19,351 nt of DNA from Selaginella moellendorffii (Eukaryota > Plantae > Lycopodiophyta), in contig NW_003314403.1 of the NCBI RefSeq assembly GCF_000143415.4, positions 308,311-327,661 of the forward strand. Direction: 5' to 3'. Below are positions 1 to 19,351 of the stretch, in pieces. The position numbers and the translations under genes were made by a program. Position 1 is the stretch's first letter, and each line of letters begins with the position of its first letter. Under the pieces are notes generated by a model. The model searched no databases. It saw nothing but the letters and a program-made list of their open reading frames with translations, and was not told the origin of the DNA.

Positions 1-3000
1 TGGTCCTGCATAGATAACTATGGCCTCCACGATTTCACTCAGCAAGAGCTTCACAATTCACAAGTCATTCCCTCAGAAGTTGCAAATATATGTGGTCTTA
101 CGTACCTCATCAAACATTTCGAAGATATCAATACTCGGTTGATGTATGGTACAGACAACGGTTCGGCCGGTTTTGACAGTGTTTCTGACGGCGCGCATGA
201 CCACCGCCGCAGCTCTTGCATCCAATCCCGATGTTGGTTCATCCATAAAAATGATGGACGGATTCGCAACAAGCTCCACTGCAATTGTCAGCCGCTTCCT
301 CTGCTCGGTGGAAAGCCCGTTGACCCCAGGAAGGCCAACAAGACCATTCTGGACGGGAGTGAGCTCCACAAGATTTAAGACTTCTTGAACAAACATCTGC
401 AGTTAATCCAGCCACCATTACGAGAATGAAAAGAACAATAAGACCACGCAAAAATTACCTTTCTGGTTCTGCTGTCAATCTCTTGAGACAGACGAAGCCA
501 TGCCGAGTAAGTAACTGATTCTCTTACTGTCACATATGGGGAGTGAATATCATTTTGCTCGCAGTATCCAGAGATTCGAGCAAACGTCTCTTGCTTTTTG
601 GGAAACCCGGAGATATTGATGCTTCCCTCGATGTAACCACCTGTCTTTCTGCCTGCAAGGACGTCCATCAACGTTGTCTTTCCAGCACCACTCACGCCAA
701 CGAGTGCCGTAAGAACTCCTGGTCGGAAGGCTCCAGTAATGTCTTGTAGCAGCTGCAGCTTGTCGTCAGACACTCCTTGCTTCTTCATTTCCTGTTTTGC
801 AATCCAGAATATGCGTCAAAACAAAAGGAAAATTCTTAAATGCACTCATACCAAAGGCATGTCAACGTAATAGTTGACATGGGAGAAAGAAATTGACAGG
901 GGAGGAAACGGCAGCACCATCCCTGTTTTAGTTGCCAATGCCATTTCCATCCCTTCCACTGCTCACAGGTAAAGTGTCAACGAAAAGAAGAACAATGGAA
1001 AATCGTACCGCTATCCCAGGTTTTACTGGCCTCGGAGAACTGAAATGTCTTTGTCTTTAGTCTTTTCTTCCGAAATAGCTCCCNNNNNNNNNNNNNNNNN
1101 NNNNNNNNNNNNNNNNNNNNNNNNNNNNNNNNNNNNNNNNNNNNNNNNNNNNNNNNNNNNNNNNNNNNNNNNNNNNNNNNNNNATTTAAGGAAAGCAACT
1201 CCAACAGTATCTGAAGAATTAGAAGGCTACAACGAAAGTTTTGGTGAGCAACACAACAAACAGCAGCAAAGAAACATGTACTCTTTGCCAGCGATGGGCA
1301 AGAAACTCGTTGGCAGAGAGTGCATTCTGCGCATAAGACAGCGGTGTACTCCAGTAACCCCAAGTTAGCCAATTTGGAATGTTCTCTGCACAAAAATTCT
1401 TGCTGAGCGAGAAGGAAAAGCGACCAACAATGTTTACCTCTGGACAAGATAAAGCCTCCTAGTGCGCACATAAGCAGGAACTGGAAAGAGCCTAGAGTGT
1501 TTGCCACAACTATAGTTCGAGACAGTGCGCCAACCATGCGAAACAATCCCAGCGACATAATATGGAGACAAATGAAGAGGAGGAACTGCTTGAAAAACCT
1601 GCAATAGCCGTGTAGGCAAATCAACCATCAGGTAAAGAAAACAGTTACCTGCTAGCCTCTGGTGCAAAGCCTATAACATAGTAAGTGATGACGGTCCATA
1701 TTGCAGAGTCCATAACAGACACCGGGATTTTCAAAAGTATGACTGGCAGTGCATACGCCCAAGCAGGATAGAACAAGAGGTCTCTCTGCTTGTAGAAAAC
1801 TGGAAGATAGACGACGGTCATGGCCATTTCAGCCATCCCATTGAAGGCTACGTTGAGCAGGCCATAAAACAAAGCACCAAGGTACTTGTTTCCATCCCCG
1901 ACGGTTTCATGATGCATTTCGGTACGCAAAAAGACTGTCATCCCGATGACTGAAACAATGCTAATCTGGAAAAGAGATAAGAATGTTGAATATTGGGAGA
2001 TAAAAAGCAAAAAAAAAAAAAAAACAATAGTTGTTACCTGTATAGCCTTGAAAATGAAGAGGAACGAGTTTCTTCTCATCAACAGCCATTCTCTGGCAAG
2101 GCATGCCTGAAACAGTTCCCAGTTTGTTAATGAGAATTTCTCGGTAACCAGAGCCGCGGGATGGCTGGTTGACTTGTCAAACGGTCGTGATAACTCCGAT
2201 ACAAGTTGCTGACCCACGCTAAATTTTTTAAACGCTTCAACGAAGTCCTCCACGGAGACGTATGAATATGGCTCATCCAATGCCCAGTATTGACTTTGAT
2301 CTTTTCTCGAAGTCACCTGATGCATGAACTAGTGAGTAGAGCTTAAAACCAAGTCTAAAGTCAGACCTCTTGTAGGAAATCAGCGACGCCTTTTCTTTCT
2401 GGACATCGGAATCCCTGAGCCTCGAAGAATTCAAGAACATTAGTACGAGGTCCTTGGTATACGATTTGGCCCTCGGACAAGAGAATAACGTCGTCAAACA
2501 GATCATATGTTTCAGGCGCCGGCTGCAGTAATGAGATGACCATAGTGCCACTCGTTGCATGAACGGATTGCTTGAGACACTTGACAATCTGATAAGTTGT
2601 TGAGCTGTCCAGACCAGTAGAAATCTCGTCCATGAAAAATGCTTTTACGGGCCCAACAAGCATCTCCCCTGGGCACAATTATAACCTTTGCTATTAAGAA
2701 AACTAAACAAGAAGATAAAGTACCTGTAGTGACTCTTTTCTTCTGACCTCCGGAAATTCCTCTCAACATGTCATTCCCCACAAAGATGTCTCCGCAAATG
2801 TCGAGACCCAGAATCTATAAGTTGATACAATTTGAGAACATTCTCAACAAAAAAACAAGAGTACCTTGAGAACATAGTCGGAAACTATACTTGTTCTTTG
2901 GCCTTGAATGGCTGAGGCCTGCAAATGCCAGCACAAATCCAGGTCAGGATCACGAGCAGAACATCACATACTTTCATAAACGCATCGATATCTGGATCTG

Positions 3001-4091
3001 GCTTGATTCCTGCTGCTCTCTCACGCTTGGCCAGTTCAGATAACATTTCTGCGTTGCAGGCAAGAGAAGTTGGAGTTTGTAGAGCAAGTAACAACAACAT
3101 ACAGACCGTATGAAGAGCCAACACCTTGGCAGCGCGATGAGAAGTCAAATGTCTCCCGTACTGTCAGTTCGCCAAGGTGTACGTCATTTTGACTTGTGTA
3201 TGAAGCAGTTCTTTGAGGCACAAACTCGTGTAATTCATGACCATTGTAGGTAACACTTCCAGTTACCTGCAAATTCTAAAGTTTAGGCAGTGCAACGGTC
3301 CATTTCAGTCTGACCTTCAAGTCATCGCTGAGCTTCCCAGAAAGAGCGAGAAGAAATGTGGTTCTTCCAGATCCGGGAGGTCCAAGGAGCAGTGTTATCC
3401 TGGAAAAGCTTCCCGATTTACGCAAGGAAAGAGATGGACATGAAACCGACCTCGATGGTTTTATTATCCCGCTAATGTTGTTTAGGACGGTAAGGGATCT
3501 TTTCCTGGTGGGAACAAGGCGCACCATGTCCAGTATGCTCTGGAGCATGCAGATTTGAGAAACATCGGACACAGGCAGATGAGTTAAAACCTCTATCCAG
3601 TTGAGTGTTGTGTTCCATAGCGTTGGCAAAGCCCTGCTTCCAACGTGAACGCGTGCAACGACATGAAGGTGTTTGAAACGAACTTCAATCTCAGGGAGTT
3701 TTAAGCCGACCCTGGACAAGAGTAGGAGATCTTAGTTTGAAAAGTCAAGCAAAAACAGGAGCGAGAGATACCTGTCAATCCTATCCCGTAACTTGGACAA
3801 GAACAGCTCGTTGTCTTCTTCGCCAATCCCAATTATCGTCTGCACAATCCTCTGCTTGTGCTCAACACCGAGCTTTGAAAGATCGACCTGTTCAAGCCTG
3901 CTACCAGACACATCTTTGAGAATTGAAGTTCTCAACCGGTTGTACGTAGGCAGCTTCTCAAGTGCGGCCCACAGCAGTGCTTCCTCCTCATTTAGTTGCC
4001 TCTCACGAGTCGACGACCGTGAGAAGACAGTGCCTTCTCTCCGGGAGCTCCTCGTGAGCGGGTTGTTCCAGAGAGGATTGTCCGTTGACAT
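1..4091 (-). CDS. Pleiotropic drug resistance (PDR / full-size ABCG) transporter, multi-exon, continues past the window start
   Basis: ATG at 4091. Spliced ORF pieces show [18 protein letters not shown]1 ([68 protein letters not shown]), TMD1 ([18 protein letters not shown]) and NBD2 ([51 protein letters not shown]). GT-AG introns, e.g. 3771-3712. N gap at 1084-1183. Confidence 0.96.
1084..1183. other. Assembly gap (100 N) inside the PDR gene
   Basis: Run of N. The flanks suggest the end of TMD1 is missing, so the true gap is probably longer than 100 bp. Confidence 0.99.
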
Positions 4092-4462: not shown

Positions 4463-5136
4463 TCAAGGGCCGGCGCCGTGGGCCTTGTATGGAAGCTCGC
4501 ATGCCGGTTCGTGGCCTTTGGATTTATGGACACCATTTCCAAGCGTCTCGGACACACTCTTACACCGGCACTGGAGCCCGGGACGTATCACGTTTCCATA
4601 CACCGCCATCTCCACCAGGTCCAGCTCTCGCGCTGCCAAAACAAACAAGATATGCTGTGTGTATAGATTCACTGCGGAAGCTCAAGAGAAGGAAGAACAC
4701 CAACCTGTGAACTTGAGATCACAAGAGTACTGCTGGAGTAGATGTTCGTCAGCGTCTTTGTTGCTCTTCAAGCGATTGACACGCGACTGCAAAATCTGGC
4801 AGTTGCTCACATCGGTCTCTCCTCCTGTATCCAAAAATTCACGCACAAAATTACAATGTGGCTGCGAGTGAGGAAGAGGAAGCGAAGGATCGAGAAGGAA
4901 CCTTTGGAGAAGGGGCGAATGTGATCAAACTCGTAGCACATACAGCCCTCGCATCCAATGAACTTGCGGCACACCACATTTCCAGCTCCATCCTTGCGCC
5001 ATCGCTCCGGATGCCGCCCGGGAACCACCTCCGCCTTCTGCCAGCACTGGCGGCGCATCTTCTCGTCGAAAAGCCGCAGCTTCCGCGCGGCATTGTCCGG
5101 CAGAGGCGACGAGGAGGACGAGGTTGCCTCCTCCAT
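4463..5136 (-). CDS. Plant HNH endonuclease-domain protein (3 exons: 5136-4902, 4824-4705, 4632-4463)
   Basis: Spliced product reads ...CWQKAEVVPGRHPERWRKDGAGNVVCRKFIGCEGCMCYEFDHIRPFSKG|GETDVSNCQILQSRVNRLKS...CDLKFT|ARELDLVEMAVYGNVIRPGLQCRC...*. GT-AG introns have compatible phases. Matches the conserved small plant HNH family. Confidence 0.9.
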
Positions 5137-5197
5137 CAAAATAAAACACTCTCAAGAACCCTAAAATCAATGTCTCTTTCATTTAGGTGGAGAATCG

Positions 5198-5339
5198 AGT
5201 CTGTGGCGCATTCATTCCCAGCCGGAGCTTCTCCGGATCGTACTCCACCCACAGATTTTGCTGCCGATGATGTTGCGCCGCGTCTGGAACGCCAGGCACA
5301 GTGTCGTGTGCTCCTCGCTGCTGCTCGAATTAGGCGCAT
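5198..5339 (-). pseudogene. Aspartic protease remnant: start codon region fused to a degraded C-terminus
   Basis: gcattgtttgct (as at 9883-9894) is joined almost directly to SSSEEHTTLCLAFQ...NII...QNLWVEYD...CATD-like sequence (as at 8356-8517). About 1.36 kb is deleted internally, plus several small deletions. Confidence 0.88.
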
Positions 5340-5633
5340 TGTTTGCTTTGTCTTCTATCTTCGTGGCAAGAAGCAACTTAAGTTGGAAGCCATGCTTAAC
5401 ATCTGAGATTGACACGATTACAAGGTGGAAGATTCTACTTCCTTGGTGCAAGCGTAAGAAATCCAGGACTCGCCAGGAAAAGATGGTGATATCTCTCATA
5501 AGGTACTTGTGATCTTTCACATTCTACTTGTGGTTTTTGTGATAAAATGGAAGCAACTCGTCACAAGGAAAAGGCAAGCTCTCTTTCTTTGCTCTAACTT
5601 GTGCATACTTCGTTTCGATCGAGCAGCAAGATC

Positions 5634-6047
5634 ATGGGCGTCAAGAAGGATGTTTTGATCATCTGTACGATGGTGGTGGCGATGGTAGCAGCAGGAGCGC
5701 AGGGCGTGAAGCTACTCTCGGGGCTGTGCAGCGACGAGTCCATCCCAGAGGGGAGCACTTACTGGAACAGCCTCAATGCGACGCTGGCGGATCTCGTCCA
5801 GAGCACTCCCACCGCCGCCAACATGACTTACAGCACCAACAAGGGAGTCGAGGGCGACGTCCCCGCCTACGGCCAGGCGCAGTGCCTCCGCAACGCCACC
5901 ACCAACGTCCTCCCAAGCCAGGACTCGTGCAGAGGCTGCATCGACGACATCATCGCCAAGGCGTGGCTGGACTGTGTCGACGCCATCGCTGTGGATGTCA
6001 AGCTCAACGACGATTGCACGCTGCGCTACCAGGACTCTCCATTGTGA
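5634..6047 (+). CDS. Secreted single-domain DUF26 / ginkbilobin-2-like cysteine-rich protein
   Basis: Signal peptide (MGVKKDVLIICTMVVAMVAAGAQG), C..YWNSLNATLADL, AYGQAQC...C-x2-C, C...C-x-LRY. Intronless, 137 aa. Confidence 0.88.
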   Translation: MGVKKDVLIICTMVVAMVAAGAQGVKLLSGLCSDESIPEGSTYWNSLNATLADLVQSTPTAANMTYSTNKGVEGDVPAYGQAQCLRNATTNVLPSQDSCRGCIDDIIAKAWLDCVDAIAVDVKLNDDCTLRYQDSPL

Positions 6048-7691: not shown

Positions 7692-8353
7692 GGCTGCCCC
7701 ACACCTCGAAGTCTAGAACCGTAAGAGAGTCGGGCCACAAGAGCCAGTGGCCTGTAGCTTCGGATGTTTTGAGGCGAGCGAGACCTTGAGCTCCTTGAGG
7801 CAGCTGGGAGCCATCTTGCTGGTGTGGCGTCTTCTTTCTTCTCAAACTTCGGGATCGCGACTTACGGCACTGATGTACTGGAAACACCAAAACAAACAAG
7901 ATATCCTGTGTGTATAGTTTCACTGCGAAAGCTCGAGAGAAGGAAGAACACCAACCTGTGAACTTGAGATCGCAAGAGTTAGAGTACTGCTGGGGTAGAT
8001 GTTCGTCAGTTGCTCTTCAAGCGATTGACACGCGACTGCAAACTCTGGCAGTTGCTCACATCGGTCTCTCCTCCTGTATCCAAAAATTCACGCACACCAT
8101 TGCACTGTGACAAAGATCGAGAAGATCGAGAAGGAACCTTTGACGAAGGGAGCGAATGTGATCAGTAGCACATACAGCCCTCGCATCCAACATTTCCAGC
8201 TCCATCCTTGCGCCATCGCTCCGGGAACCACCTCCGCCTAGCTTCCGCGCGGTATTGTCTAGCAGCCGAGGATACCTCCTCCATCAAATTAAACACTCTC
8301 AACTCTCAAGAACCCTAAAATCACTGTCTCTTTCATTTAGGTAGAGAATCTAG

Positions 8354-9886
8354 TTAGTCTGTGGCGCATTGCGCTGGGGCGATCCCCAGGCGCAGCTTCT
8401 CCAGATCGTACTCCACCCACAGGTTTTGCTGCTGGTAGTTCCCGATGATGTTGAAGGGAATGTCGCCGCTCATCTGGAACGCCAGGCACAGTGTCGTCTG
8501 CTCCTCGCTGCTGCTCACGGGTATGAGAATGCTGTTCTTGGGGAGCACCACGTCCAGGCCGCCGCGGAAATGCAGCGTGATCGAGGGAAGGATCGTGGAT
8601 TCCAGCGCGGCGGTGCCGCTGGTGATGTTGTAGCAGGGAGTGAAGCCGGAGTTATCGTCCACTTTGGCCAGGTGAGACGTTCTCGCCAAGAACTCTCTCC
8701 TCATCGCTTGGAAGGCAGGCTTCTTGAGGTACGTAAACGCAGTCCCCGAGTCGATGATCGTTCCGCCGCTGCCAGTCACCTTGTCGATGTCGAAGTTTTT
8801 GTGTGACAGTGGCAACCGGCTCTCGTCCACGCTGATCCCGACCAGGCCAACGTAGTAGTAGTCCAAGGATGCGCTTGGAACCGCCGGGTTCTGGACGAGC
8901 GGCGTGTATCGGAGATACGGGGAGATGATATCCGACTCCCCGAAGAAGACGAGGCCGGAAGAGTTGAGGTGGGCGATCTTGTCCGGGAAGCAGTGAGAAA
9001 ACTTTCGAGCGTACCGCGAGCTTAGCTGCGACGGGAAGGAGATCGGCCTCCGGTCCATTCCCAGCAGCCCGGACGCTCCCGTCGGTAAGCCTTCTCGATC
9101 GATATCCGCGCAACCGAGGGTGATGTTGCTGAGCTTCACAGGTTCGCCATCTCCAAAGTTTGGGGTGTTGCCGGCGATGGTTTCCATGGCCAGCAAGCCC
9201 GAGCTCAAGCTTCCATCACCGTACTGGATAGAGAAGAGGCAAGTTCTTCCAGACGGGCTGCAAAATGGCTTGACACCTTGGTAGACGTTGGTGCAAGTGG
9301 AGGAGGCGCAGGGAAGCTTGAAGAAGGAGGAAGAGTGGCGGGGATTGAAAGGTGGCCGGAGAGCCGGCACGCAGTCTTTGCAAGGCACGCACTGGATCCA
9401 GGAGACGTCGCTGCCCGTGTCCATGATGAGAACAACTTCCACTGCTGGTGTCCCGAGTTGGAGTGGCACGTAGTACTCGAGCCCGGCTTGTCCCAGCGTC
9501 ACAACGGGGCTCGTGAACCCGGTCAAGGCGTTTTTTCCATGGTTACGATGGTGGTGATGGTGGTGGTGGTGGCGGTGGTGGTGGTGGTGGTGCTTACTTC
9601 GACGATGTTTTGCTACTCGAGCCTGCCGCGCTTGAACGTACTGGATGACATCTTTGAAGGCAGCATCACGGTGCGTGGGAGAAGACTCGGAATCAAGCTC
9701 TAGTGCAAGCTTCTCGTCTCTCAGCTTGGACCTGGGTGCATCCCTGTGAACGACACTGAAGCCGATGCTTGTGCTTCCATCGCTGGCCTCGAGCACGGAT
9801 CTGACGTCCAGAGAATGAGCAGCAGCAGCAGCAACAGTCGATCTGATGAGCACAAACAGCAGCAACAATGGTTTGGAAGGCTGCAT
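8354..9886 (-). CDS. Secreted A1-family aspartic protease (nepenthesin/CDR1-like atypical class), intronless, 510 aa
   Basis: Signal peptide, EYYVPLQLGTP, catalytic DTGS and DSGT, Cys-rich QCVPCKDC insert, YGDGS, GLLG, IIGNYQQQNLWVEYD. His-rich prosegment. Confidence 0.96.
   Translation of the reverse strand: MQPSKPLLLLFVLIRSTVAAAAAHSLDVRSVLEASDGSTSIGFSVVHRDAPRSKLRDEKLALELDSESSPTHRDAAFKDVIQYVQARQARVAKHRRSKHHHHHHRHHHHHHHHRNHGKNALTGFTSPVVTLGQAGLEYYVPLQLGTPAVEVVLIMDTGSDVSWIQCVPCKDCVPALRPPFNPRHSSSFFKLPCASSTCTNVYQGVKPFCSPSGRTCLFSIQYGDGSLSSGLLAMETIAGNTPNFGDGEPVKLSNITLGCADIDREGLPTGASGLLGMDRRPISFPSQLSSRYARKFSHCFPDKIAHLNSSGLVFFGESDIISPYLRYTPLVQNPAVPSASLDYYYVGLVGISVDESRLPLSHKNFDIDKVTGSGGTIIDSGTAFTYLKKPAFQAMRREFLARTSHLAKVDDNSGFTPCYNITSGTAALESTILPSITLHFRGGLDVVLPKNSILIPVSSSEEQTTLCLAFQMSGDIPFNIIGNYQQQNLWVEYDLEKLRLGIAPAQCATD
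9540..9592 (-). repeat. (CAC)n-rich tract encoding poly-His within the protease prosegment
   Basis: ggt/gat triplet run on the + strand, translating as HHHHHHRHHHHHHHRNH. Confidence 0.9.
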
Positions 9887-10316
9887 TGTTTGCTCTTCTC
9901 TGGAGGGAGCAAGCTCCTTTTATGGGCAACGTCCAGCCGATCCATCTGTGGAGTAACGTAAGAGGCCTGTTCTCGAGGGGTGGTGGCAAGAAGCAACTTA
10001 AGCTGGAAGCCGTTTTGGTTTATGCTTAACATCCGAGATTGACACAATCACAAGGTGGAAGATTCTACTTCCTTGTACAAGCCTCAAAAATCCAGGACAC
10101 CAGGAAATATGGAAGTTTCATCTATGATCTCTCTCATCAGGTACGTGTCAATATGATCTTCCACATTCTAACATTCCAACTGTGCTTTATTGTAGCTATG
10201 TGTGATCGGGCGGAAACGATTCATCACAAGGAAAAGGTAAGCTTGCTGTTGTTTTCTTTGTTACTCTAACTTGTGCTTGCTTTGTTTCCAGAGCTCTTCA
10301 ATCGAGCAGCACGATC

Positions 10317-10535
10317 ATGGGCTTAGAGAGAAGGAAGTTGTGATCGTCTGGGCGGTGGCGGTGGCGATGGTAGCAGCAGGAGCGCAGGGCGTGAAGCTAC
10401 TCTCAGCGAGGAATCCATTCCAGAGTGGAACAGCCTCGGATCTCGATCATGGCACTTACTGGAACAGCCTCAACTAAAAGCTGTCGACTGTGTCGCAGGA
10501 CTCGACAACACTGCTCCCACTTCCAGGTGTGATCC
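10317..10535 (+). pseudogene. DUF26/Gnk2 pseudogene (paralog of 5634-6047)
   Basis: Retains VAMVAAGAQGVKLLS and TYWNSLN followed by TAA. Early frameshift after the ATG, and most of the Cys core is deleted. Confidence 0.88.
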
Positions 10536-10786: not shown

Positions 10787-13700
10787 ATGGCCGATGCCCA
10801 CCGCCACCACCACGAGGAGCGCCAGGAGGAGGACGAGGGTGGCGGCGGTGGCGATGAGCAAATCCTCCACTCGTCAAAGGGATGCTGCCGCTTCCTGCGA
10901 TCGCTCCGGGCGCTGGTGGTGGTCACGCTGGTGCTCCACTTGGGCATCTCCGCGCTGGGCACCGCAATGGCTGTGGTGTCGTCCTCCTCCAGCGGCTGCC
11001 CACGATCGCTGCTAGTGGCGGCGGCGCTGGTTGCTAGCGGCGCTTGCGCGCGAGTGGCTTGGGTGGTGGGCACTGGCTTGTGCCAGGCCGCCACCGCGGT
11101 TACCATGATCGCCGAGGAGCACGTCCCAGCTTCTCGGAGGAGGACGAGCGGCGCCACCAGCGCGGCGATCAGGATTGGGAGACGGGTAAGAAACAAGCAA
11201 TGTGGATTCTCATCTCTTTTTTGCTCTTGCTCGAGCACAGATTTGGTATCGAAGGTGGCTATGGTGGGGACGATTTGGTGTTCTTGTCACCTCCTTCCAA
11301 ACAGGAGGAGCTTGCTACTTGACCATCTTGGCTGTGAGGAACGGTCGTTCATCCTTTTGCTTTCCTGGTAAGGATCAAGCACTGTGTTCTTTGGATCTTC
11401 TCTTTGTTCTAGCTCTATAGGATCTTCTCCTTTGTTTTCTCTCTCGTGTCACAGGCCCTGACGCGGCGGCATTGTTGCGAGACACGCTTGTCATCCTTCC
11501 CATCGCTACATGGCTGCTCGTCTTGGCACAGTGTTGCGTTGGCTCGGACGTGCTCTCTTGGAGGTCGCTCTACGAGATGCAACACGAGGCATGGCGCGCT
11601 CACTACCGCGAGATTTTCGATCGCGGCATTCGAGAGCTGCTTTGCTGCCTTGGGCGATCGAGATATCTGTGAGTCGCGAAAGAAAAATCGCTTTTTTCTT
11701 GTGTGCTCATCCAGTACTTGTGAATGAATCTCCAGGACAACCATGGATGAAGACGAGGTTGATACGGTGGCAGCACTTTTAGGCGATCTTGTTGCATACC
11801 GTGCTGCCGGTGCAAGCCATCTCGAGTTTCTCGCTGGTAAAGATTCATGGATAGAACTTGCGAGCAAGCTTTTTTATCCTTCTTTGTTTCTACAGGTGTT
11901 GCTCTTCTGAGAACTCGCAAATCCAAGCCTCCAGTTCCGAAAGATCTCCCTCCGGCTCCCGGTCCTCTGGTCACAGAAGCTGCTCTTCTCCATCCATATG
12001 CCGTGGCTGCGTACACGGTTTGCGATTGTCAAAACAATGCTCTCAGCTTCAAAGAGTTCTCTTGCTGATCTTCCCAGGGACCATTGCTGGACATTGGACG
12101 CACACCGCTACTCTTTCCCTGTGCTTGGATGTACCGGCAAGGACTCCTCAGCTTATGGAACCGCAAAAGGTAGCTCGAGTTTTTTCTTTCATCTCCGAGA
12201 AACAGCTAACTAAGCTTTGGCTTGCAGGAGTCCGAGTGTCGACGGTGATAATTGGTGGCGAGGCCATGCGACTGCGTTCCTTCGTGCTGCTCGCCTCCCA
12301 GCCGAGGCGCTCTTGAAAGGAAGGATTCACCAGGTTTTGATGTTTGTAGCGTCACAAGTTTCCCGCGAACTGACTTGGTCACTCACTATTTCAGAGAAAC
12401 CGAGAGACAGTCTACTTCGTGATTGAGTTGAAGGAACTCAAGTTGGTTGTTGTCGCTGTTCGTGGGACTGAAACACCGGAGGATCTTCTCACAGATGGCC
12501 TGGGACGTGAATGCATCCTTGCCGACACTGATTTTCAAGGATTGTTCATGTACGTAGTGCTCTCGCTCTCATTCCCTACAAGTTTGATACTCTACGCAGG
12601 TCTGGTCATTTGTCTGACACAGCAAAGCTTGAAATCTCGTCGTCAAATCCTCACTATGGCCATGCCGGTGTGGTGGCGGCGGCCAGAGAGCTTGCCTTCG
12701 AGTTGGACAGCCCTGAAGATAATCCCGAGCTTTCAGGTTTGGAAAAAAAAAGGCTTGCTCTTTAAGTTCATTTCTTTAGCAGGTAGCTCTGGATCATCGA
12801 AAAAAACTGGTTTTTTGACTTCCATACTCGGTCCCGGTGGGAAGTGTGAAGGCTTTTCTTTGAGATTTACCGGACACTCTCTCGGTGGATCGATTGCTGC
12901 TATGGCGGGAATGATGGTACGTATGCATAAGTTTTTCCTCTCTTGTTTTTCAATCTCTTTCTCTTTTTCGAGCAGCTATGGCACCGCTTTCCAAACTTAC
13001 ACACTTACGGATATGGCGTTTCTTCCCTGTGTCGACGCTGTTATCGCAGAAGCGTGCTCACCATNNNNNNNNNNNNNNNNNNNNNNNNNNNNNNNNNNNN
13101 NNNNNNNNNNNNNNNNNNNNNNNNNNNNNNNNNNNNNNNNNNNNNNNNNNNNNNNNNNNNNNNNTAACAAGGTAGGCCGAAAGCTTCTTTCATCCTGCCC
13201 TGACCGTCCACCACCTTTTAGTGTTGTGTATAACGACGAGTTTGCATCGAGGATGTCCGTGGCTTCGCTAATGAGGCTCCGCGCGGCCTCGCTTCGAGCT
13301 CTAGCAGCGGACTCGGACACCTCCGAGTCGGCAGTGATAGCGAGAGTGGCCAGAAGGCTCTTCGGCTCATGGAGGCGAGGCAAAGCTTCCAATGGAGTGG
13401 CCACTGGCAAAACTTCCAATGGAGGAGCCACTAACGAAGACTCCAATCCAAGTCCCGGTGGAGCAACGCAGTACAAGCGTGGCAAATGCGGCCACAAGCT
13501 CAAAGGTGGAGCCTTTCTTTGCTACCATGCTTGTCACTGTGTCATGGGCATGCCCAAGGGCGCTCATGGCAGCTCGACCGTGGTAATGGGAAGGCCGGTT
13601 GTTTCCGCGGCCAATGGTAGTGTTAATGGTGACGGTGGTAAGCTAGAGGCGACCAGGGTGGTGTCCGGGGAGGTTACGGTTGAGGAGAACGGTTCTGACG

Positions 13701-14266: not shown

Positions 14267-15129
14267 TCAGTTGAAAAGAGTGGAAATGACAAGCTCTTGC
14301 ATGAATTTGACTCGCAAGTTTGCTTCCTTCAGTTTGTCGCACTGCTCCTCCGGGGACAAAGCTGCAGCCTCCAGCCTGTGTTTGGAGAGGAAGATTAGAA
14401 CCAAGACAACCGCGAGGCAATGCCATACCCTTTGTGTGAAGATTGGCTTGCGTGCGAGCTATCAGAGAGCGTGGTGAGGAACGGATCCACTGTGTTACTG
14501 GGCGGTGGAGGCCTAACAACGCTTGCATATGGATCTCTCTAAGCTCCTTGGTGAGCAAAGCCAAAGTTGCGTTTGATGCTAGTGCTCCTGATCTTCGAAA
14601 ACGCCGCCGTCTCTGGATGTGGATGTGTAGTCAAGGAGAATTATCTGATTTTGTTCGTGTTTCAAAACGTTTGAAAGGATATCTTGGAAAGCTGACTGTG
14701 GTCTAGCATTATGTGGCCGGCCATGTCTTTCCAAACTAGATCGGACAGACCTGCAGCTAGATGAACTTAGCACATCGCTTGCAATAAACAAGAGAAAGAA
14801 AAGAAAATTCGAAGGAAACACAGGATAGCAGCACAGACCAACCGCACAGAAACTAAAGGCACTTACTGCAACCTTAGACTCATAGCAGTGCTCGTCTTCT
14901 AGTGCGAACAAAGGACAGCAACATCGTAATCTTCGTAGCAATAGGGACACGAGTACTCGGTATGCTTCGTCTGGATTATCTGGCGATGAAGAGAAAGAAA
15001 TGAGAAACCATTCCAGAGATTTAGATATCCCCCGTACCTGATTGCTGGCGCTTGGGAGTTGACGAGGAAGCAGAAGAGGAGGACGAAGTTCCGGTGATTG
15101 CCGTTACAAGCATCTCCATCGCCATCCAT
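14267..15129 (-). pseudogene. Di19: Drought-induced 19 (Di19) zinc-finger family pseudogene, 5 exons, several frameshifts
   Basis: EYSCPYCYEDYDVAVLCSH/LEDEHCYESKVA|VCPI../VWKDMAGHIMLDHSQLSK|IQRRRRFRR...LLTKELREIHMQALLG/...VDPFL..|LSPEEQCDKLKEANLRVKFMQELVISTLFN*. Slashes mark frameshifts. Confidence 0.88.
14619..14682 (-). other. U12-type (minor spliceosome) AT-AC intron, 64 nt
   Basis: 5' site ATATCCTTT at 14682, branch site TTCTCCTTGAC at 14640-14630 and terminal AC at 14620-14619. Removal joins ...QLSK to IQRRRR in frame. Confidence 0.9.
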
Positions 15130-15197
15130 GTCGCAAGTCTTCCTTGCCAGTGGTGGTAGCGTTGGTGGCACGACCAAGCGGCCCCGGTACTATAACG

Positions 15198-15305
15198 TGT
15201 TGGAACTAAGCTGAACATGCACACAACCAGGGCAGGTAGCTACCTGGCACCGGTGTAGGAGGTTCTGGGTTCAATCCCCGGCCTGTCCAGATCCATTTTC
15301 CAACA
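15198..15305. mobile_element. 108-bp element with TGTTGGAA...TTCCAACA termini and 5-bp TSD (TAACG); solo-LTR/TRIM-like or integrase-mobilised mini-element
   Basis: Perfect 8-bp terminal inverted repeats, TG..CA ends, and TAACG at both 15193-15197 and 15306-15310. Confidence 0.8.
15230..15289 (+). ncRNA. Shortened tRNA-like sequence (60 nt) inside the 108-bp element; putative Pol III unit
   Basis: Acceptor stem GGGCAGG/CCTGTCC plus discriminator A. T arm CTGGG-TTCAATC-CCCGG (B box) and A-box-like TAGCTACCTGG. D/anticodon region is about 12 nt short. CAA just upstream, TTTT at 15296-15299. Confidence 0.7.
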
Positions 15306-15546
15306 TAACGGCCCCGGGTGCTAAGAGGGGTCTGACAAAGCCTCCGCCACCACCACCACCTCTCCCCCGTCCCCTGGCTAGCACCTCCTCGACCGTCACT
15401 TGTGCTAACCTTGCGCTAGAACAATGCATGGAAAAAGGGCCCTGCTTTTCGTTCTCTCGCTTTCCCTGTGCCTTGCGCCTGGGCCTTGTGTGCTCGGTGA
15501 AGGAAGACGACGCACCACCCGGCCACCGTGGACGCCACGTGGCCGC

Positions 15547-15948
15547 CTAGTCGGGCCAGTTGAAAGAGATGCGTAGTAACTCCTTGGGCACACGTCCGAA
15601 TCCCTGGCTGATGCGTAGCATCGCCTCAAACTCGTCGCTGTCCTTCTTCAGGCCGGAAAGTTGCTGGAGCGCCCTCTCCATGAAGGCGTCGTAGCTCTCC
15701 AGCGATTGCTTGGACGAGTTGGAGGTACTGCTTCGGGGGGACGACCTCACCAGGCTGTGGAGTGAGGACGAGAGCTTTGGAGAGTGCACAAACGGCATCA
15801 TCTTCGTCCAAGGGTGGAGGAGCCGGAGGAGCCGAGGAAGTATCAACCTCCATAGCTTCTTCTGCTGGAACAGCCAAATCCATCTTGTCTGCACGCTCGG
15901 GCTCTGGATCTTGACCCGAGTTGCTAGCCTCGCCTGGAGCTCCAGAAT
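15547..15948 (-). pseudogene. Frameshifted terminal-exon-like ORF of unknown (possibly transposon accessory) protein
   Basis: Acceptor ttccctttgtag at 15949, then SGAPGEASNSGQDPEPERADKMDLAVPAEEAMEVD...KQYLQLV, a frameshift, then QSLESYDAFMERALQQLSGLKKDSDEFEAMLRISQGFGRVPKELLRISFNWPD*. Confidence 0.4.
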
Positions 15949-16145: not shown

Positions 16146-17351
16146 TAACAAACCTAAACATGTTTGTGTTCAACATCTTTGGCAGGTACCTGATTGTCAA
16201 CCGATGGCTGTTGCTTTCGTTTCCTCGGAGAATATGTTCATAACTGTAGTTTTATGTAAACAGAAGAGCTGGTGGACATAAAATGGTGAACAAAATACCT
16301 GAACAGGCGGGCCAACAGTTCTCTGGAGTTCGATCTGCTGTTATATGTTAAAAATAACGGTTGTGGACATAAAATGATAAATATAAAACCTCAACAGGCG
16401 GCTGATCGTCATCGATGGTCCCTGCCGGGCTGGCCTCAGGCAGCTCCTCATCTTCCTCGGTGTTAAAAATAAATCTTGTGAACATAAAACGGTAAACAAC
16501 AAACCTGAACTGGCAGCTGATGGTCATCGGTTCCTTGCTCAACAGTCGCTGCCCCTTCAGCTTCGGTCTGTTAAATGTTAAAAGTAAGACAAGCGCATAT
16601 AAAACTGTAAATGGAAAACCTCAACAGGCGGCTAGCCTGCTTCATCTTCCTTGGTCTGTAGTTACATGTTAAAAGTAAACATTGTAAACATAAAAAGGTA
16701 AATAGAGAACCTGAATGTGCCTACGGTTGAGAAGCTCTTGGGCCTGATGGCGGTCGCCCGACATTGGATTCTCGAACCCAGCAGCAGCCAGGAGCCGGCC
16801 AAGAGTAATCAGAGGGGGTGCAGGGGAGTCGTCGATGGTGACAACAGCTGGTACTTCTCTCTGAAAAATTTTTTATGAAAGAAGAAAAGAGAAAAGAAAA
16901 ACCTTCTTCCACTGTAACTTCTTTTGCTCAATTTCGCTTTCAGCCTTTTTTGGAAACTGATGTTAACTTCAAAAGAAAAAGAAACCAAAATAGAGAGCTT
17001 GCTTCTCTCTCCTAGCCCTCCGATCACGCTTGCAAGTCTCACTCACCCTCTAGTACTTGTCTATAAGTTTCTCGTACTCTGTAAAGGTTGCGCGAAACGA
17101 GCAAATCTCTCTGAATTCTTGGTTTGTCGTTATAGGTCCCGGTGAGCTCTGACCTCATCGCGCTAATCAGAACCTTCTTTGTCTTTGTCTTTCTCAAGAA
17201 ACTTCTCCGCATGCATATATTTTTTGTTCTTCGATGGTTGGTGGGATCAATGTTTCCTCCCTGCTCCTCACTTAAACAATGTCTGCAACACAAACAGCAC
17301 AACGTTAAACGTCCACACAGTAACTATAAAACTGATTTCATACCTCTTCTC
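16146..17351 (-). repeat. Left arm (1206 bp) of a long inverted repeat
   Basis: Reverse complement of 17383-18613. Begins taacaaacctaaaca and ends actgatttcatacctcttctc. Confidence 0.97.
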
Positions 17352-17382
17352 TGTTGTGGACCTTCAAGTTTAGTTTCCTCTT

Positions 17383-18613
17383 GAGAAGAGGTATGAAATC
17401 AGTTTTATGGTTACTATGTGGACGTTTAACGTTTTGTTGTTTGTGTTGCAAGTGACATTGTTTAAGCGAGGAGCAGGGAGGAAACATCAATCCCACCAAC
17501 CATCGAAGAACAAAAAATATATGCATGCAGAGAAGTTTCTCGAGAAAGAACAAGCAAAGACAAAGAAGGTTCTGATTAGCACAAGGAGGTCAGAGCTCAC
17601 CGGGATCTATAACGACAAATCAAGGATTCAGAGAGATTTGCTTGTTTTGTGCAACCTTTATGAGTACGAGAAACTTATAGACGAGTACTGGAGGGTGAGT
17701 GAGACTCGCAAGCTCGAGCAGAGGGCTAGGAGAGAGAAGCAGGTAAGCTCTCTATTTTGGTTTTTTTTCTTTTGAAGCTAACATCGGTTTCCAAAAAAGG
17801 CTGAAAGCGAAATTGAGCGAAAGAAGTTACAGCGGAAGAAGGTAGGTTTTTCTTTTCTCTTTTCTTCTTTTATAAAAAAAATTTCAGAGAGAAGTACCAG
17901 CTGTTGTCACCATCAACGACTCCCCTGCACCCCTTCTGATGACTCCTGGCTGGCTCCTGGCCACTGCTGGGTTCGAGAATCCAATGTCGGGCGACCGCCA
18001 TCAGGCCCAAGAGCTTCTCAACCGTAGGCACATTCAGGTTCTCTATTTACCTTTTTATGTTTACAATGTTTACTTTTAACATGTAACTGCAGACTGAGGA
18101 AGATGAAGCAGACCAGCCGCCTGTTGAGGTTTTCCATTTACAATTTTATATGAGCTTGTCTTACTTTTAACATTTAACAGACCGAAGCTGAAGGGGCAGC
18201 AACTGTTGAGCAAGGACCGATGACCATCAGCTGCCAGTTCAGGTTTGTTGTTTACCGTTTTATGTTCACAAGATTTAGTTTTAACATGTAACTGCAGACC
18301 GAGGAAGATGAGGAGCCGCCTGAGGCCAGCCCGGCAGGGACCATCGATGACGATCAGCCACCTGTTGAGGTTTTATATTTATTGTTTTATGTCCACAACC
18401 GTTATTTTTAACATATAACAGCAGATCGAACTCCGGAGAACTGTTGGCCCACCTGTTCAGGTATTTTGTTCACCATTCTATGTTCACCAGCTCTTCTGTT
18501 AACATGAAACTACAGTTATCAACATATTCTCCGAGGAAACGAAAGCAACAGCCATCGGTTGACAATCAGGTACCTGCCAAAGATGTTGAACACAAACGTG
18601 TTTAGGTTTGTTA
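17383..18613 (+). repeat. Right arm (1231 bp) of a long inverted repeat; 31-nt spacer at 17352-17382
   Basis: Begins gagaagaggtatgaaatcagt and ends tgtttaggtttgtta. Arms differ by scattered transitions and small indels. Confidence 0.97.
17455..18569 (+). pseudogene. 5'-truncated multi-exon gene of unknown product within the right arm (mirror copy on the - strand in the left arm)
   Basis: Phase-0 GT-AG introns separate exons ..17742, 17800-17841, 17888-18037, 18093-18128, 18181-18242, 18298-18369, 18425-18460 and 18516-18569. Exon lengths are multiples of 3 except one 62-nt exon (63 nt in the left arm). Confidence 0.7.
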
Positions 18614-18639: not shown

Positions 18640-19351
18640 TAGTGACTCTTTTTTTGTCATTTCCCACAAAGATGTCTCCGCAAATGTCAAGGCCCAGAAT
18701 CTATAAGTTGATACAATTTGAGAACATTCTCAACAAAAAAACAAGAGTACCTTGAGAACATAGTCGGAAACTATACTTGTTCTTTGGCCTTGAATGGCTG
18801 AGGCCTGCAAATACCAGCACAAATCCAGGTCAGGATCACGAGCACAATATCACATACTTTCATAAACGCATCGATATCTGGATCTGGCTTGATTCCTGCT
18901 GCTCCCTCACGCTTGGCCAGTTCAGATAACATTTCTGCGTTGCAGGCAAGAGAAGTTGGAGTTTGTAGAGCTAGTAGCAACAACATACCGACCGTATGAA
19001 GAGCCAACACCTTGACAGCGCGATGAGAAGTCAAATGTCTCCCGTACTGTCAGTTCGTCCAGGTGTACGTCATTTTGACTGGTGTATGAAGCAGTTCGTT
19101 GAGGCACAAACTCGTGTAATTCATGACCATTGTAGGTAACACTTCCAGTTACCTGCAAATTCTAAAGTTTAGGCAGTGCAATATGGTCCATTTCAGTCTG
19201 ACCTTCAAGTCATCGCTGAGCTTCCCAGAAAGAGCGAGAAGAAATGTGCTTCTTCCAGATCCGGGAGGTCCAAGGAGCAGCGTTATCCTGGAAAAGCTCC
19301 CGATTTACGCAAGGAAAGAGATGGACATGAAACCGACCTCGATGGTTTTAT
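18640..19351 (-). pseudogene. Second PDR/ABCG copy, 3'-truncated within NBD1; 5' part extends beyond the window end
   Basis: Near-identical to about 2727-3463, introns included. The [10 protein letters not shown] signature segment is deleted near 18650 and homology stops at about 18640. Carries HLGE to HLDE and GRTT to GRST changes. Confidence 0.9.

Follow-up and report, generated by a model that had tools for sequence, protein, structure and literature searches.

Helenus elements are non-autonomous miniature LTR retrotransposons (TRIMs) with a tRNA-derived sequence in their LTRs, and have been presented as the 'twin' of the 5S-bearing Cassandra (Kojima, 2024, Biology 13:119, PMC10886601). 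The sole plant family described in that paper is Helenus-1_SMo of Selaginella moellendorffii. Its full-length elements measure 325 bp, with LTRs of 120 bp on either side of an 85-bp internal part, and are flanked by a 5-bp target site duplication (TSD; PMC10886601, TSD in Table S1). The internal part starts with the primer binding site (PBS) TGGTATCGGAGC and ends with AGGGGGGAG, the polypurine tract (PPT), and the tRNA-like part of the LTR consensus, 72 nt long, forms a complete pseudo-cloverleaf in which box A, TAGCTCAGTGG, is perfect (DataS1 of PMC10886601). Kojima inferred without experiment that the tRNA-derived boxes are a Pol III promoter, proposed that Helenus originated from a tRNA-derived SINE inserted into a TRIM LTR, and described solo LTRs arising from recombination between the two LTRs (PMC10886601).

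The locus under study lies in a window of 19,351 bp, the whole stretch of DNA that was analysed, on contig NW_003314403.1 of S. moellendorffii. The letters, read directly, define a 108-bp element that has TG...CA ends and a perfect 8-bp terminal inverted repeat, with TGTTGGAA on the left and TTCCAACA on the right, and is flanked by a perfect 5-bp TSD, TAACG. The coordinates and letters agree with an initial annotation of this DNA, which had taken the insert to be possibly the solo LTR of a tRNA-based analogue of Cassandra and possibly undescribed. The former proposal was to the point, since such an analogue exists in Helenus and Helenus-1_SMo matches the sequence. The latter was not, as the element is already described, the family having been published in 2024 from the same genome assembly (PMC10886601). 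We consider it almost certain that the insert derives from Helenus-1_SMo (TRIM type 'TRIMp3') as a solo LTR.

Aligned by eye with the LTR consensus (DataS1 of PMC10886601), the window copy is identical at 106 of 108 aligned letters and has one 12-bp deletion. The three differences are an A-to-G change at 15202, a C-to-T change at 15264, and the loss of CAGTGGTAGAGC between 15241 and 15242. The first of them puts G instead of A at LTR position 5, which makes the terminal inverted repeat perfect over 8 bp here. The tRNA-like segment has a 7-bp acceptor stem (GGGCAGG/CCTGTCC), a discriminator A, and a 5-bp T stem (CTGGG/CCCGG) around TTCAATC, with box B lying intact within the T arm. The initial annotation had already noted the acceptor stem, the T arm with box B, and a TTTT run overlapping the right terminus, all of which were found again; its 'fully paired' acceptor stem contains one G-U pair. 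The coordinates of these features are collected in Table 1.

Table 1. Features of the insert and its borders, in window positions.
Feature	Position	Strand	Basis
Left TSD copy, TAACG	15193..15197	.	Read directly; X4 and X9 contigs show a single TAACG followed by the right flank
Solo LTR assigned with near certainty to Helenus-1_SMo, 108 bp versus the 120-bp consensus	15198..15305	+	Published consensus; contig borders
LTR leader of 32 bp (U3-like), with CAA just 5' of the acceptor stem	15198..15229	+	Equal to the consensus except for G instead of A at 15202
tRNA-derived segment, 60 nt here versus 72 nt in the family; acceptor, anticodon, and T arms kept	15230..15289	+	Letters; consensus; folding
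Junction of the 12-bp deletion, family letters CAGTGGTAGAGC	15241..15242	+	Published consensus; other copies in contigs
Substitution, T here versus C in the family	15264	+	Consensus; C in 15/15 covering contigs from 4 runs
Box B GGTTCAATCCC of the tRNA-type Pol III promoter	15268..15278	+	Read directly; kept in the family consensus
TTTT run, 7 nt 3' of the tRNA-like end; possible weak Pol III terminator, to judge from its letters	15296..15299	+	Read directly; in the consensus too
Right TSD copy, TAACG	15306..15310	.	Read directly
First coding exon of the Di19-like gene	15038..15129	-	Partial zf-Di19 Pfam match; frames; X4 and X9 contigs

The window copy thus shares with Helenus-1_SMo the species, the LTR sequence, the TG...CA ends, the 5-bp TSD, the tRNA-derived core with box B, and the TTTT near the 3' end. 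It differs in being a solo LTR that lacks the PBS, the internal part, and the PPT, and in its length of 108 instead of 120 bp, owing to a 12-bp deletion that is absent from all other contigs examined. The PBS and PPT that lie between two LTRs in the family have no counterpart at this locus, where TAACG abuts a single LTR on both sides. This is the state expected of a solo LTR. The LTR sequence occurs only once in the 19,351-bp window. The defining features of the Helenus-1_SMo LTR that can be assessed on a solo LTR are present, apart from the pair of promoter boxes, in which box A was truncated by the deletion. The likeness to Cassandra TRIMs (Kalendar et al., 2008, as far as they are presented in PMC10886601) is one of organization, since these are also miniature, non-autonomous, and equipped with a Pol III-type small-RNA gene in the LTR and a 5-bp TSD. 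In contrast to the tRNA-type LTR of the window, the Cassandra LTR, as presented in the same source, has box A, IE, and box C within a 5S rRNA sequence. Cassandra and Helenus are of independent origin. Membership in Cassandra itself was rejected, as a search of Rfam returned no 5S rRNA match either at the gathering score or with E values up to 10.

We then inspected contigs from four public sequencing runs (X2, X4, X8, and X9), which were placed on window positions 15000-15500. The DNA run X8 contributed 41 contigs, most of which cover only 15198-15305; the depth of contigs cannot give a copy number. Loose ends of the X8 contigs lie at 15197/15198 and 15305/15306, and the agreement with the flank consensus is only 0.53-0.59. 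The low agreement of the flanks, combined with the exact borders, points to many copies that have the same ends and different flanks; the initial annotation had named many copies with the same ends and different 5-bp TSDs as support. The repeat is accordingly a dispersed, multi-copy one. A chance pattern is ruled out because the published repeat consensus matches and dozens of contigs from an independent DNA run match nothing but 15198-15305. In one X8 contig and two X2 contigs, letters of the type ...GTGTTCAGCTTAGGGGGGA stand just before the LTR start. The PPT-bearing contigs end in ...TTCAGCTTAGGGGGGA or a variant of it before the LTR, corresponding to the polypurine 3' end of the published internal part. 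Such a PPT directly 5' of the LTR indicates that full-length Helenus-1_SMo copies exist. The initial annotation had also called for paired copies flanking a PBS and a PPT. This was borne out in part, with PPT-bearing flanks in X8 and X2 and the full form published, while no PBS junction occurs among the loose ends listed. The contigs of other copies have C at 15264 and CAGTGGTAGAGC behind 15241, by which the consensus is reproduced independently.

The same contigs clarify the nature of the missing 12 bp. In the window copy, the D loop and the 3' D stem are gone along with the final base of the 5' D stem, and box A (TAGCTCAGTGG) has lost most of its letters, with TAGCT left. With respect to the boxes of the family (TRGCY...YGG for box A and GGTTC for box B), the window copy has kept box B and has box A cut to TAGCT. 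Other copies have CAGTGGTAGAGC or CACTGGTAAAGC inserted behind 15241 (contigs of X2, X4, and X9), and in X8 contigs the missing 12 nt show up in loose ends with CAGTGGTA. Where the window has TAGCTACCTGG (15237-15247), other copies in the public-run contigs read TAGCTCAGTGGTAGAGC. Therefore, TAGCTACCTGG is the deletion junction, and the A-box-like motif that the initial annotation had recognized in it is an artefact. None of the contigs placed from the four runs carries the window's own deletion. The 'compact, collapsed' tRNA is thus damage, seen in this copy only, and not design. The description as a compact Pol III transcription unit could accordingly not be upheld, with the D arm and most of box A removed by a deletion that no other placed contig has; with its box A truncated, the window copy is probably a poor Pol III unit, weak at best. 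The collapse reported for the D/anticodon region applies to the D arm, which is the missing part, but the anticodon arm CCTGG-CACCGGT-GTAGG is still there.

A second Helenus LTR variant was noticed among the contigs (X8 record 9 and X2 record 2). It aligns with the 108-bp copy without gaps and with 12-14 mismatches; with CAG at 15242-15244, its TAGCTCAGTGG is intact. The variant points to a subfamily whose 108-bp-long LTR has kept box A and lost 12 nt from another place in the tRNA-like part. Together with the possible presence/absence polymorphism considered below, this variant is among the few mildly new points of the analysis.

The proposed history of the locus would start from a 325-bp element composed of an LTR, an initiator-Met-type PBS, the 85-bp internal part ending in the PPT, and a second LTR. 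This element would have been reverse-transcribed and inserted with duplication of TAACG, the integrase and reverse transcriptase being supplied by an autonomous LTR retrotransposon; the integrase of such an element would account for the TG...CA ends and the 5-bp duplication. Recombination between the LTRs would later have removed the internal part and one LTR, and the solo LTR left behind would then have gained the two substitutions and the 12-bp deletion. We infer this order of events, and likewise the Pol III transcription of the family LTR. To make a genomic RNA, Pol III would need to pass the TTTT of the 5' LTR, which lies only 7 nt 3' of the tRNA-like end inside the LTR, and to terminate at that of the 3' LTR; the R region would then be ~80 nt long. 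As the window copy has neither PBS nor PPT, it cannot transpose and is an immobile relic.

The initial annotation had further speculated that the tRNA-like RNA serves as its own primer for reverse transcription. Self-priming was rejected, because it would need a PBS reading TGGTGGACAGG, the complement of ...CCTGTCCA-CCA, and the family PBS TGGTATCGGAGC does not match it. The latter is of the initiator-Met type and is one letter off the usual plant initiator-Met PBS. The published survey also argues against self-priming, in that no Helenus PBS is complementary to the element's own tRNA-like sequence (Kojima, PMC10886601). No PBS-like TGGTATCGGAGC was found beside the element; three matches with 2 mismatches occur elsewhere in the window, far off and at chance level.

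Two contigs bear on how recently the insertion took place. A 3218-nt contig of X4 runs from the Di19 exon through TAACG into GCCCCAGGTG, which is the right flank in the window with one change. In a contig of X9, 15180 is followed by 44 letters and then by 15305, from where the contig continues to 15344. These 44 letters are fully explained by a 31-nt indel, which is in X4 too, and the left flank up to ATAACG. With a single TAACG each, the two contigs show a precise empty site. By comparison, the filled site is represented by run X1 only, probably the source sample, which contains all its words. Looking for an empty site in the other haplotype had been suggested by the initial annotation. The empty site was seen, in contigs that have other differences to the window (+30 nt at 15088/15089, +8 nt at 15141, and +31 nt at 15179) and may therefore come from a close paralogue or from a closely related or sister taxon as well as from the other haplotype. 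The letters GGCCCCGG, present on both sides of the insert, were considered as a longer TSD and rejected; they are a property of the target locus, as the empty-site contig reads ...CGGCCCCGGTACTATAACG-GCCCCAGGTG.

The empty-site contigs hint at a polymorphism and so bear on how recently plant Helenus moved. That Helenus-1_SMo was recently mobile in S. moellendorffii, leaving this insertion polymorphic within the 5' leader of the Di19-like gene, is a tentative reading that we hold to be possible yet rather doubtful. If true, a plant tRNA-bearing TRIM would for the first time be shown to have been active recently, and the insertion would provide a usable presence/absence marker.

The solo LTR lies in a gene-dense region, antisense to its neighbors, between a DUF7615-type gene (15547-15894, minus) and the Di19-like gene (minus). 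The ATG of the latter is at 15129 or 15125 (minus), so that the element is 69-73 bp away, in keeping with the earlier estimate of about 70 bp upstream. If the X4 and X9 runs are RNA, which is a guess, the insert is located within the 5' leader (5' UTR) of the Di19-like gene, as their contigs cross from the exon over the insertion site. The insert adds two ATGs on the Di19 strand. The one at 15296 opens an 18-codon uORF, and the one at 15218 is in frame with the MAMEML start. The zinc finger of the gene (14899-15129, minus) is disrupted: the CPYC...CSH half is out of frame with the stretches on either side of it, with CPYCYEDYDVAVLCSH in one frame and the adjoining DNPDE... and LEDEHCYESKVAV in another, which looks like a compensating frameshift pair. 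The Pfam zf-Di19 profile gives a partial match in the downstream ORF, covering profile positions 2-20 only. The window copy of the gene looks like a decayed allele or paralogue, and the two upstream ATGs have been added to the leader of an already decayed-looking copy. For a damaged, immobile solo LTR of a published family, the finding matters little beyond correct annotation. Two further observations were made on this gene. Contigs of other runs have a longer DNPDEDESRT stretch, and a short GT...AG intron of 58 nt (14980-15037, minus) is implied by X4 and X9 loose ends at 15038.

Searches for a tRNA gave little. ARAGORN found no tRNA gene in the window copy, and Rfam had no match on the element at the gathering score. 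With lax settings (E up to 10), the Rfam tRNA model still gave no match. The best lax match was mascRNA-menRNA with 15.9 bits and E = 1.2, against a gathering score of 42.5. The outcome of the tRNA and covariance-model search proposed by the initial annotation was thus negative apart from this lax match; the acceptor stem and box B are nonetheless there. A functional nuclear tRNA gene was rejected on account of the negative ARAGORN and Rfam results, the deleted D arm, and the A at position 33 in the anticodon loop CACCGGT, where U33 is expected. In the folding calculations, the pair probability was 0.99 for the acceptor stem and 0.19-0.43 for the T stem. The D-armless tRNA-like fold has -18.8 kcal/mol compared with -22.7 kcal/mol for the minimum free energy (MFE) structure, i.e., it is 3.9 kcal/mol above it, and the z-scores of -0.44 and 0.03 demonstrate that the sequence folds no better than when shuffled. 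A stable tRNA-like fold, lying above the MFE and having a weak T stem and z-scores near 0, is therefore unsupported. For annotation, the element shows that short tRNA-like matches in the S. moellendorffii genome can be Helenus LTRs instead of tRNA genes or novel RNA genes.

These results also bear on whether the host has taken over the insert, either through transcription of the D-armless RNA and its maturation by RNase P, RNase Z, and CCA-adding enzyme to yield a mascRNA-like small tRNA mimic, or through regulation of the Di19-like gene by the insert. The robust acceptor stem, the possible T and anticodon stems, and the weak mascRNA-menRNA match are compatible with the former, and the position in the 5' leader with two ATGs added on the gene strand is compatible with the latter. 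We consider such a takeover very improbable, as box A is mostly deleted with a spacing of ~20 nt between its remnant and box B, the fold is no better than shuffles, and the Rfam score is far under the gathering score. In addition, a deletion in no placed contig and only 2 substitutions contain nothing that indicates selection, the neighboring Di19 copy has a disrupted zinc-finger frame, and no RNA contig of the filled locus was seen among those placed. The mascRNA and MEN-beta tRNA-like small RNAs (RF01684) also have an acceptor stem and a T arm with a reduced central region between them. They are, unlike the window element, 3'-end products of vertebrate lncRNAs, and the likeness is in shape only, with an insignificant score. 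A small tRNA mimic made from the D-armless copy would be a less likely extension of the reading that Helenus-1_SMo was recently mobile.

The tRNA-like acceptor stem, T arm, and box B would equally be found in a tRNA-derived SINE or in a dispersed pseudo-tRNA copied by LINE machinery. SINEs of the SINE2 type have a tRNA-derived head with box A and box B, as the family LTR does. In contrast to it, they are devoid of LTR ends, PBS, PPT, and a fixed 5-bp TSD, have 3' tails, and depend on LINEs. The window element has inverted TG...CA ends and the fixed 5-bp TSD, with no A-rich, T-rich, or simple-repeat tail after TTCCAACA; the similarity of other copies stops exactly at TG and CA, with some of them preceded by a polypurine tract, and the family possesses PBS and PPT (PMC10886601). 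Taken together, a SINE or pseudo-tRNA origin has next to no chance of being correct. A MITE moved by a transposase that gives 5-bp duplications would explain the perfect 8-bp terminal inverted repeat and the TSD, but is just as negligible, as the same sequence forms paired direct repeats around PBS and PPT in the published full-length family, PPT-bearing flanks occur in the contigs, short inverted TG...CA ends are normal for LTRs, and we know of no plant DNA-transposon superfamily with 5-bp TSDs.

Several other structures were noticed in the window, apart from the solo LTR of Helenus-1_SMo. A direct repeat of ~700 bp with 97-100% identity occupies 2769-3464 and 18655-19351. Its copies are ~15.9 kb apart, the second reaches the window end, and they may belong to a larger duplication, as its edge, or be a long terminal repeat pair. 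A run of N (assembly gap) at 13090-13200 falls inside a class-3 lipase-like gene (GHSLGG motif; Pfam Lipase_3). Tandem paralogous segments that are 89-95% identical (4600-5720, 7890-8520, and 10020-10400) adjoin a TAXi-type aspartyl protease gene (8354-9886, minus). Finally, a near-perfect 2.4-kb palindrome spans 16146-18613, with its center near 17367 and with arms that are 92-99% complementary. It is made of exon/intron-like units with 91- and 115-bp periodicity; either a repetitive gene segment was duplicated here in inverted orientation, or the structure is a foldback element.
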